From positions 7,502,001 through 7,566,000 of the forward strand of contig OZ176050.1 in assembly GCA_964247055.1 (NCBI GenBank): a stretch of DNA of 64,000 nucleotides, written 5' to 3'. Positions 18,001-22,478 of this stretch are shown here, piece after piece. The notes beneath the pieces were generated by a model that did not search any database, had not been told where the DNA came from, and worked only from the letters and a program-made list of their open reading frames with translations. Source of the DNA: Paragordius varius (taxonomy: Eukaryota > Animalia > Nematomorpha). The position numbers were made by a program, and so were the translations under genes. The number at the start of each line of letters is the position of its first letter. The first letter of the stretch is position 1.

Positions 18001-19223
18001 TAAAAATAAAATTCTGAAATTATATAAATAATTTAAATTAATATAAAAATTGTTATTATTAATAACATGCCTAGCCATAATATAAATATAGATAGATTTC
18101 GGAAATTAAAAAGCCAAGTTATAAATTATTTAAATTAATTAATTATTTATGCAAATTCCAAAAGTTAGTGGTTTTGAATATTCCATTATTATTGCTGTTG
18201 CTCTTTTGTTAATCACTCTACCAATGTATAAATGGATGGTACTTTTAATAAGTAATTATTTAGTTGCCATGAAAAAAAAATTTTTTTTGGTTTTTATTTC
18301 CAACCCCAATTTAACAGATAACTAAAGGATTGGGAAAATATCTTTGAAATAGTTTTCAGGCATATGCATATACTAATCTATAAGATTGAGTTAACTGGTT
18401 ATGAACTTGATTCATGAGTATAAAAAATGTCATATTTCATTTAATTATTTTTGTTTGTGTCATTAACACTTCCTTACCTTGTGGGGGTAGTTTGATATCC
18501 CAGAGCGCTTTAAAATTTGTAGATCCTAGAAAGTTAAGGATTGGGCCAAATTTAAAAATTGCTTTCTATAGTTTTTTAGGGGCAAGTTTCAAATTTTCAA
18601 CAAAAGGCAAAATTGTAAAAAAATCCTCATCTTAAACTTTTTCGCCCCTCATTTTTTTAGTTTTTAAATTTTTTATCGCTACAACAGGCAAATAAATATA
18701 TACTATGGTAGAAAATGTAAATAATTAACTTTAGAAAGCTCAGACAACATTTAACCATCACATACTTGATATTTCATATATAAAATCAGCTGTTATTGGG
18801 TTGCGGAGCTATCCAAATTGGGAATTTTAAAAGTTAAAAAAACTTTAAAAACTATAAATTTTTAATTTAATACTAGAGATCAATGTTTGGTAATTGTATA
18901 AATAACCAAAACAAAACAGTATTTATTTATTACGCTTAGGGGATATCCCAATAGTAATCGTCTGAAAAATAACAAATTAAAATATTAAAAAGAAATTGAT
19001 TGAATAATTTTGTATAAGTCAATAGTTACCATTCATTAATTCAAAAGATTGACTGTTTTCATATAAATTCAGAAAATTTTTATAATTACATCAAATGTGA
19101 AAGATCCCAAAAGCTTTTAACACTCGCCTAGCTTGGAAATCCATAGACCATTATGCGGACGCCCTAATCCAGCTTCTACCAATAAATTTATTAATTTATA
19201 TTAAAATATATTTTAGATCAATT

Positions 19224-21873
19224 ATGGAAGAACAAATTTTTGTCAGTTCTGTAGAATCCTCTGCAAGCAACTACACTTATAACCCATATTTTTACAATTT
19301 CCCTGGTTTTTCTTTTACACATCAAAATGCCAAGGATCAAGAGTGTCCTTCGCATTATGAAACTAATTACCATGAGAAGTACAATAGCAATACTGCTAAT
19401 AATGGAGTGCCATGTGGTGAAATTAATCAAAATATTCAAAAATCTACTAATGACTCCAATATGTACAAATTTACTTTGGCTCATGACTATAGTAACAATG
19501 ATATTTATCATAATGGCCAAAATCACGTTTCAGAGGGTAAACAAAATTCCTCTGGGGATCTTTGTAATGTGAATTGCAACTCATCTCCCTCGGCTCAACA
19601 TCTCACCAATGTTACGCCATATGAGCAGGCAGTACCTGACGATGAACATGCAGAACAAGGGAAAAGTGAACAAAACCCATTAGTTCCAATCAACTTTGAT
19701 TATTATGCAAACACTTTGCTTGGACGTAAGGATGTGTCGTCGTCCATTAACTCTGCTGGTTATAATTTCAATCCCGCTGCTGCTTATGAGGGATATACAC
19801 ATCCCTATTATTACAATTATGGGTATAATAGTAATGTTTCTGGAACAGGAGGATACGATAACTTTTACAATACATCTTTATTAGCTAGCAATGCGCAGCA
19901 ATCATTTTTCAACTCAGCCATCAGCTTGGGTTATGATGCCGTAAATAACGGAACGATCCCAATAGATAATTCGATATTATCGACTGGAACAAACTTAGGT
20001 GTATATGGTTTTGGGCAACACCCGTTTAACTCAGAATGTTTGCAATGGCCATACTGGAATGGTAGTCAAGGAACTTATGAAAACACTCAAATTATGGCAG
20101 ATGGCATGCAGGAAGATCAAGACAATTTAAGCGCAACTCAAACAAATATCTTAAGCAAAACGAAATCGCCTCATACTGAGAAAAAAGCTAACAAAAATTA
20201 TTCTAACCATAGCATGATTTTACATCAACCCTTTTTAACCGCCAGTGAATCCAACAACCCTGATTATCCAATCAACAGTCGAGATAACATTAATTCCTCT
20301 GCACCTCATAATTCAATACTCTCTCATTTGAATCCCATGTCATCCCTAACAAATTTTAAACCAAACGATATATTCGGAAGAAAAGATTTTCCCTTCTACA
20401 ATTTTTATGCAGCGGCAGCGGCTGGAGCAAGTACTTATCCTTTAGCTGCCTGTTGCACTTTGATGAGTAAAACGAAGTGTCAGGAGGATGAATTAGAAAA
20501 TAATTATAGAGAAGAGGGTTGTAACTTAGTCTATAATGAAAAATTCAAAAACGAGGACAAAACCCGTACTAATGGTCTTAATATATCATTTATGGGGTTG
20601 AATTCATCACTGGTTGGTAGTGACGTTTCGTTTTCAAAAACAATGTCTTTGGAAAATTCGATTGACGTATATGGAACGCCAAAGAAAGAAATCATCACAG
20701 GCCAGAAAAAAAGAAATGGTAACACCAAACTGAATGGGAAAACGCTTAATAGAACAGCTGATTTGAATAATAACAGTCGTGTTACAAAATATTCAGATCT
20801 ATACTCCAATTACAAAGAAAAGGGAGTGAACGTCACCCCTACTAAAACGGATAAAACAAATAAATCTTTACTCTCCACCGATTATGGTAAATCCAACAAA
20901 GATAACTTAAGCTGTGCTGATCCTCCTATGCAACAGTCTAGAATGGACCCAAATAAAATGGATACTAGATATCAATCAAACTTATGTTCAGCTGACTGTG
21001 AATTGAATACTACGCATTGTGAATCGATAATTGGCAATGATCCGAAAGATTTGGAGGCTTTTGCAGAGAAATTTAAGCAAAGACGTATTAAGCTGGGAGT
21101 TACACAAGCCGATGTGGGAAACGCCTTAGCCAAATTAAATATCCCGGGTGTAGGGGCTTTATCACAGAGTACCATATGTAGGTAGGCTTTAAATAAGCAA
21201 ATTAAATCTTTATTTAATAAGTTGATAAAAAAGGTACACAAATAAGAAATTAATTCATTAGCTAAGTAAGGCATGTAGCATACTTTTTTCAGTGATTTTA
21301 AGCCAACTCTCGAAAATTATATAAATGATGAATACTCTTTTGTAGATTTGAATCTCTTACCCTAAGTCATAATAATATGGTGGCGTTAAAACCAATCCTC
21401 CAAGCCTGGCTCCAAGAAGCCGAAACTGAAGCTATCAATGGTTTCGGAGAACTGTTAGCAGCATCCTATAATACCAACAATGCTAACAGTAGCATAATCA
21501 GTAGTATAAATATAGCCAAGCATAAAAATTTTCATAGCATGAAAAACGAGACGGGAAACTTGAACAATAATGATCACGGGAAAAGTACAACATATTCCAA
21601 TGCTCTCCGTTTTGAACAATCCAGTAGAGATGGAGCAAGTACTAAGCTTGTCTTGAAAAATGGTGTCAATCCCGCGAACAAAAAATTGGAAAAGGCGAAT
21701 AAACATGAAGGAACGCAACAGAGCACATCTCATTCTGATACAATTACGAATAACCTCACATATCAACCACATGTTATAGCGACAGAATCGGCATTAGGCA
21801 TGACTCTATCCAATTATGAACAATATTTCGGTAATGAACATTAATCAAATATTTCTATTTTATGTTAAATTTA

Positions 21874-21911
<38 letters not shown>

Positions 21912-22478
21912 TTAGCTTATTACAACGGTGCCGATCAAACATCCAACAATCCAAATATTAATAGCGAAATGAAAGATAAAAATTTCTTTGGGTACTCAGA
22001 AACTCCGTCTATGCCAATTCAAACAACATCACCTTTGTTGTCTGAAAGTAGATTGCCGGATTGCAATGATTTGTGTAATCCCAGTTACGATTTCCATGTA
22101 AATCATCCCACTATCCCTTCTAATAACAGCTATACCAACAAAACCAAATCATCATCCAATAAAACGTTTTCCTATGTTCCCAACAAAAAAGAAAGTAACC
22201 CAATGATTGCGGATAACTCATCTTCTCAGGGCACAACAACCAGTCCCAACGCTTTAGATGCCATTAAAAGGAAACGCACTTCAATAGCAGCACCTGAAAA
22301 ACGATCGTTAGAAGCTTACTTTGCTGTGCAGCCCCGACCCTCGGGAGACAAAATTAGTCTTATAGCGGAAAAACTTGACCTGAAAAAGAATGTGGTAAGA
22401 GTATGGTTTTGTAACCAAAGACAAAAACAGAAGCGTATGAAATTTTCGGCAAACAACAAAGGAATTGATCTTTTATGA
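19224..22478 (+). CDS. POU4: Class IV POU homeodomain transcription factor (Brn3/unc-86/acj6 family), ~1001 aa
   Basis: Exons 19224-21181, 21346-21830 and 21916-22478 (3006 nt, in frame; GT-AG introns of 164 and 85 nt). POU-specific domain DPKDLEAFAEKFKQRRIKLGVTQADVGNALAKLNIPGVGALSQSTICR|FESLTLSHNNMVALKPILQAWLQEAE and homeodomain KRKRTSIAAPEKRSLEAYFAVQPRPS...VVRVWFCNQRQKQKRMK are diagnostic of POU4. A splice acceptor at 19216, just upstream of the ATG, suggests an additional 5' exon that I could not place. Confidence 0.95.

Follow-up and report, generated by a model that had tools for sequence, protein, structure and literature searches.

The window analyzed here is a stretch of 64,000 nucleotides (nt) of the hairworm Paragordius varius (Nematomorpha; assembly GCA_964247055.1, contig OZ176050.1, positions 7,502,001 to 7,566,000, forward strand). 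It contains a POU class IV gene of three exons (19224-22478 in window coordinates, plus strand), in which a predicted linker of 252 amino acids (aa) stands between a POU-specific domain and a POU homeodomain that are both intact. The POU domain is a textbook pair of DNA-binding modules, in which a short tether governs how the two cooperate. According to textbooks this linker spans ~15-56 aa, a length that is typical of the family, but not part of its definition. The probable explanation of the hairworm gene is a tolerated inflation of the tether into a disordered segment rich in asparagine, serine and threonine (N/S/T), which would be translated in the main product and would leave the two halves coupled, with a wider reach.

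A class IV POU gene with a 252-residue linker

Exon calls and translations were read exon by exon from the window, and searches, alignments and structure predictions were likewise carried out per exon. The POU-specific domain and the C-terminal homeodomain share one joined frame via two GT..AG introns of 164 and 85 nt (a slash marks an exon border; GC, guanine-cytosine content):

19224-21181, plus strand: exon 1, an N/S/T/Y-rich N-terminal region of ~600 aa, then the start of the POU-specific domain (~21039-21181)
21182-21345, plus strand: intron 1, 164 nt, AG/GTAGGC ... TTTTGTAG/A, phase 2, GC 25%
21346-21424, plus strand: first part of exon 2, the end of the POU-specific domain (FESLTLSHNNMVALKPILQAWLQEAE); WLQEAE finishes at 21424
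21425-21830, plus strand: first part of the linker, 406 nt (135 codons + 1 base of a split codon)
21831-21915, plus strand: intron 2, 85 nt, G/GTAATG ... TTTATTTAG/C, phase 1, GC 8%
21916-22265, plus strand: second part of the linker, 350 nt (2 bases + 116 codons)
22266-22436, plus strand: POU homeodomain, KRKRTSIAAPEKRSLEAYF...VVRVWFCNQRQKQKR; KRKRTSIAAP begins at 22266
22437-22478, plus strand: short C-terminal tail (translation MKFSANNKGIDLL) and TGA stop

The linker amounts to 252 codons (135 + 1 split + 116; 756 coding bases), all of them open. Exon 1 holds the first two thirds of the POU-specific domain and ends with ...SQSTIC and the AG of a split Arg codon, intron 1 splitting the domain at STICR/FESL. 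The ATG at 19224 is the first in a frame that is open for ~41 codons further upstream, and the start is therefore provisional (open reading frame 19224-21185). In full, exon 2 extends over 21346-21830 and exon 3 over 21916-22478, the product of the latter continuing after the linker as KRKRTSIAAPEKRSLEAYF...VVRVWFCNQRQKQKRMKFSANNKGIDLL, followed by TGA. Intron 2 contains a (TA)15 run (21881-21911; Tandem Repeats Finder), and reading through this intron leads to an in-frame stop (NEH-stop). The Pfam Pou profile (PF00157, cut-off 27 bits) matches exon 1 with profile positions 2-45 (aa 606-652, 51.6 bits) and exon 2 with positions 47-72 (34.4 bits), and the Homeodomain profile (PF00046) matches exon 3 in full length (1-57, 63.8 bits).

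Identity to class IV proteins of many phyla is 83-87% for the POU-specific part and 85-97% for the homeodomain. The named best matches of both subdomains are nearly all “POU domain, class 4,” “inhibitory POU” or “Brn3,” the others having uninformative names, such as “hypothetical protein.” The homeodomain signature, AAPEKRSLEAYFAVQPRPSG.KI, is of the class IV type. Judged by its sequence, the gene is a class IV POU gene (Brn-3/Unc-86/Acj6) of a hairworm with a genome of ~25% GC. The top match, an 881-aa Acipenser sinensis protein labeled “UNVERIFIED_CONTAM,” was rejected as a relative: it is a mis-merged model of three tandem ordinary fish POU4 copies, and heads the match list because it matches three times. 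BLASTP of window positions 20199-20498 against the POU-IV box region of Xenopus POU4F2, a single-sequence comparison without a box profile, gave no alignment; by eye, NDIFGRKDF...AAAAAGA faintly resembles SNIFGGLDE...AEALAAVD of POU4F2.

Among 255 class IV proteins having both domain borders, the linker measures 16-58 aa, with a mode of 18, and solved POU domains all measure 146-167 residues overall; the linker of the window gene is thus roughly ten-fold longer than normal. A first-pass annotation of the window had described a POU4 gene with near-canonical DNA-binding subdomains and a linker of ~135 + ~117 aa (21425-22265), interrupted by an 85-nt intron and far outside the normal POU range. 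Re-reading returns the same coordinates and 252 codons (vs. 16-58 aa in the 255 proteins), and the Pfam matches and the class IV identity of both subdomains bear out the remainder. The alignment with POU4 of relatives, which it had proposed, shows that a second hairworm species shares a long linker (163 aa, see below).

The first part of the linker consists of 15% N, 12% S and 10% T, the second part of 16% S, 15% N, 9% T and 9% P. Disorder-favoring residues make up 63-71%, the mean hydropathy is -0.8 to -1.0, and the net charge is near zero. In AlphaFold2 (AF2) models built from one or two sequences, the predicted local distance difference test (pLDDT) score is 29-39 in the first part of the linker and 35-50 in the second, and 78-85 in the homeodomain helices. 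A folded domain inserted in the linker was considered and rejected: the Pfam scan found no domain there, and the AF2 pLDDT stays below 50, a value that is weak evidence with one or two sequences. An origin by tandem repetition, or a recent repeat array, was also rejected, the only trace being a 12-nt near-duplicate at 21487-21509. In the word search and the exhaustive search, the linker pieces had no relatives of their own, and only the flanking domains were matched; a match to a protein of the rotifer Seison that extends into the linker is compositional.

Just upstream of the gene, the window carries a high-copy repeat at 18500-18833, whose k-mer depth in two DNA runs is 30-60 times that of the neighboring gene. 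Its stretch 18609-18740 is rich in contig joints and loose ends.

Signs of translation in the linker

Both linker pieces are stop-free solely in the frame that joins the two domains, with 3-17 stops in each of the other five frames. When the pieces are shuffled, they stay stop-free in 5e-5 (first part) and 7e-4 (second part) of the trials. At ~25% GC, the average of the window, long open frames are rare. The GC content of both linker pieces is 37%, compared to 37% in exon 1 and 39-42% in the domains, and to 25% in intron 1, 8% in intron 2 and 23-25% in the gene flanks. The codon-position composition of the linker (A-rich at first and second positions, T-rich at the third) is like that of exon 1 and unlike that of an intron or flank.

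Further signs come from a comparison of strains: three DNA-like contig sets (three samples, two studies) cover the gene and show many differences from the window. Among the differences listed, those in the linker comprise 6 synonymous and 8 nonsynonymous changes and 0 stops (random expectation, 20/76/4%; P 0.048), and 15 of 32 are synonymous if the N-terminal region is included (P 6e-4). A rough ratio of nonsynonymous to synonymous rates (dN/dS) of ~0.36 is obtained from the strain differences. The indels listed within the coding sequence (CDS) are all of 3 nt, one at 19751 and one in the linker at 21739, the latter being an in-frame ACA insertion in one strain; among the indels listed, those of 1 nt start right past the stop (22479, 22529, 22665). 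Although the strain counts are small and refer to the differences listed, the signs all agree in direction, and the linker looks translated and mildly constrained.

Long linkers in other genomes

The closest true match of the POU-specific part comes from another horsehair worm, Gordionus sp. m RMFG-2023 (Nematomorpha), whose model P0002 is 98% identical over 48 aa (exon 1 part) and 90% identical over the next 29 aa (exon 2 part). The Gordionus orthologue is represented by a cluster of four models, of which P0335 (CAK9299410.1 in ENA, XP_065318816.1 in RefSeq; 783 aa) is the full protein, with a linker of 163 aa. Intron places were deduced from these models: P0002 ends with ...NQNFGN and a stop, a read-through of the intron matching intron 2; P0334 ends at STICR, reading into the intron matching intron 1; and P0333 starts inside intron 1. 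Both genes have a long N-rich N-terminus, a long N/S-rich linker and introns at matching places, and the Gordionus homeodomain and C-terminal tail (KFSAANKANDLM) are near-identical to those of the window gene. The two linkers differ in length (163 vs. 252 aa) and, apart from the junction (Gordionus ...NQNF/E/SYYENTG vs. window ...EQYF/A/YYNG), are not alignable. They also differ in annotation: the public RefSeq name of P0335, “GATA zinc finger domain-containing protein 14-like,” does not recognize the POU domain and is a misnomer caused by the asparagine-rich composition. The Gordionus annotation was produced with BRAKER1/2 and TSEBRA using RNA-seq hints (10.1101/2023.06.26.546503). The genome of G. 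montsenyensis has a GC content of 26.9%.

The longest POU linker found in this analysis belongs to Seison nebaliae (Rotifera), whose class IV-like, 1645-aa protein KAI3382302.1 (P0420) carries an N/S/T-rich linker of 609 aa. A single frame of 1675 codons without interruption encodes the end of the POU-specific domain together with the linker and homeodomain (L006:1459-6483; GCA_023231475.1, JALJEE010002126.1; GC 34%). As in the window gene, the genome is AT-rich, and a POU-specific domain and homeodomain, both intact, flank a very long stretch rich in N/S/T; unlike in the window gene, this stretch is 609 aa long, has no intron and belongs to a different phylum. Because the phylum is different, the expansion in Seison would be independent.

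An exhaustive search with exon 3 added intermediate lengths: 71 aa in Romanomermis culicivorax (A0A915KZM5, P0406), 73 aa in P0393 and 93 aa in P0323, the latter two having N/S-rich linkers and stemming from metagenome or Logan contigs. In these predicted proteins, class IV linker length is a distribution with a long tail, not one with a sharp limit, and very long predicted linkers occur in at least two phyla. In the literature searched, very long POU linkers are not the subject of any paper, nor does any paper tie Seison or hairworm POU genes to them.

Within the P. varius genome itself (110.6 Mb, 44 contigs), a profile scan of the contigs found three POU genes. The POU3-like gene lies in an open frame of 1654 codons and has very long flanks rich in N/S (L001:112-3072; C1, ~8.38 Mb, minus strand). 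Its linker has only 16 aa (SNSGSPSSIDKIAAQG) and contains the class III motif SPSSIDKIAAQ; the linker motif of this class has been described as helical (PMC1935007). The POU2-like gene (L002:1380-2560; C6, ~7.7946-7.7958 Mb) has exons of ~52% GC in a genome of 25% GC, and its open frame would yield an A/S/G/Q-rich linker of ~126 aa. This pattern fits disordered segments having inflated in bulk, with structured ones spared.

A predicted tether of wider reach

According to the explanation preferred here, a tether of normally ~18 residues would have grown to 252 disordered residues, with both DNA-binding halves left intact. The expansion would be older than the divergence from Gordionus, whose linker has 163 aa and an intron at the matching place, and sequence and length would since have drifted freely under mild constraint only. 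It may be one instance of disordered segments inflating throughout the genome, presumably allowed in the class IV linker because this tether is unstructured. The linker of the class III gene in this genome has the helical motif and has stayed at 16 aa.

Since the DNA-contacting stretches of both halves are intact, each half should recognize its usual half-site. The POU linker has been described as a tether, which maintains a high local concentration of the halves (PMC4482079). A worm-like-chain estimate (persistence length 3 Å, 3.8 Å per residue) gives effective concentrations at a distance of 25 Å of 6.5 mM for 18 aa, 1.9 mM for 163 aa, 1.1 mM for 252 aa and 0.3 mM for 609 aa. At 60-100 Å, the estimate is 0.1-0.5 mM for 252 aa and essentially zero for 18 aa. 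The worm-like-chain approach to effective concentration is reportedly that of Zhou, from 2001. With tethering at ~1 mM, composite POU4 sites would still be bound, and limits on the spacing and orientation of half-sites would relax to ~60-100 Å (20-30 bp), or to another duplex. The predicted loss at adjacent sites is only about six-fold, so the halves should stay coupled. The first-pass annotation had proposed that the subdomains may be “effectively uncoupled”; with ~1 mM estimated for 252 aa vs. ~6.5 mM for 18 aa, this suggestion does not hold up well, and “geometrically unconstrained” would be the more fitting description.

Alternative explanations

Several points weigh against a translated, inflated tether that still couples the two halves. 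The binding behavior outlined above is inferred purely from polymer theory. The variant counts are small and refer to the differences listed, beyond which there are 87 further differences and 15 further indels, and the test ignores transition bias. An RNA run covering the gene was not found: one presumed-RNA run has no coverage of it, and both introns are covered in the other three, which behave as DNA and so are silent on splicing. The Gordionus models come from a prediction pipeline (BRAKER with RNA-seq hints) and not from cloned cDNAs; the hints lend them support short of proof. In-phase alternative donors are present in the linker, and in the POU2-like gene a strong in-phase donor (CAG/GTATGC at 1742) could reduce the linker to ~31 aa.

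A possible, albeit unlikely, alternative is that the long linker has a job of its own, either as a low-complexity module for activation, condensation or partner binding, or as a device that changes site choice by wide or variable spacing, looping, or bridging of DNA segments. The latter reading is that of the first-pass annotation, which named altered site recognition, DNA looping or trans binding. Such a role would agree with the mild purifying selection (rather than neutrality) that the rough dN/dS of ~0.36 points to, with the retention of a long linker in two hairworm species and, independently, in Seison, and with the chain estimate of 0.1-0.5 mM at 60-100 Å, where short linkers provide none. 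In other POU classes the linker can serve as a functional interface, as for Oct4 according to work cited in PMC4245813. However, a motif common to the two hairworm linkers was not found, the junction excepted, and linker length varies between 163, 252 and 609 aa. Moreover, a like composition recurs in the N-terminal 600 aa and in further genes of this genome, which fits bulk inflation, and the linker contains no Pfam domain and no confident fold.

The first-pass annotation had raised the alternative that splicing may remove much of the linker. It is improbable that the main transcript loses most of 21425-22265 in this way, which would result in a linker of normal length and make the long frame a minor or retained-intron isoform. 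All GT and AG dinucleotides in the linker were tabulated with their phase. The in-phase sites are only weak; pairs that would give a short linker are available, for example donor 21504 (gta/GTATAAAT) or 21441 with acceptor 22257 (CGCTTTAG/AT). The strong upstream donor of the POU2-like gene, in the same genome, lends the idea some further weight. Yet the candidate acceptors lack the T-rich tract seen at the two real acceptors of the gene, and an intron would not be expected to stay open over 252 codons or to keep an exon-like GC content and codon-position bias. The synonymous excess and the 3-nt indels are equally unlike an intron; none of the four Gordionus models skips the linker, and in Seison the linker region has no intron at all. 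A minor short-linker isoform may be conceivable. Micro-introns were rejected as the cause of the linker's length: of the 15 GT..AG segments of 20-32 nt, 6 are in frame, and each would remove at most 10 aa even if used.

That the gene is decaying, or that its frame is an artifact of assembly or annotation, is hardly credible and has nothing in its favor except the oddity of the gene, given that both subdomains are intact and 90-98% identical to those of Gordionus, and that DNA runs of three samples from two studies carry the sequence without frameshifts in the CDS.

Implications for the POU tether

The long-linker POU4 genes can be seen as natural experiments, in which a neuronal identity factor of deep conservation carries a linker 9 to 30 times as long as usual. 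Engineered changes of the linker reportedly alter the binding flexibility of Oct-1, in work ascribed to van Leeuwen and colleagues in 1997, and the genes described here put the idea of the POU tether to a clean test in nature. Should the proteins be functional, they would either place an upper bound on the importance of the tether or point to another mode of binding. A bolder generalization, doubtful at present, is that POU linker length is unconstrained in nature: at least two phyla would have tethers of 160-600 residues, the half-sites might be variably spaced or lie on separate DNA, in a looser or bridging mode closed to proteins with short linkers, and the linker might perhaps serve as a low-complexity interaction module. 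For gene annotation, the misnaming of the Gordionus orthologue (“GATA zinc finger ... 14-like”) and the read-through models imply that homeobox surveys of AT-rich parasites may miscount POU genes.

Comparison with known systems

With vertebrate POU4F1-3/Brn-3, C. elegans UNC-86 and Drosophila Acj6/I-POU, the window gene shares the order of a POU-specific domain followed by a POU homeodomain. It retains KRKRTSI (the RK arm), the recognition-helix stretch VVRVWFCNQRQKQKR and SQSTICRFE, as found in class IV factors. In contrast to these factors, whose linkers measure 16-58 aa (mode 18), it has a linker of 252 aa, and its N/S/T/Y-rich N-terminal region of ~600 aa sets it apart as well.

Outside the POU family, the closest likeness is to organisms with AT-rich genomes, such as Plasmodium falciparum and Dictyostelium, whose proteins carry low-complexity, asparagine-rich insertions. 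Like the hairworm linker, these insertions are N/S/T-rich, fast-evolving and variable in length, and they are located in loops or linkers between conserved blocks. Unlike them, the linker described here occurs in an animal, and is placed inside a bipartite DNA-binding domain, the geometry of which is thought to depend on linker length.

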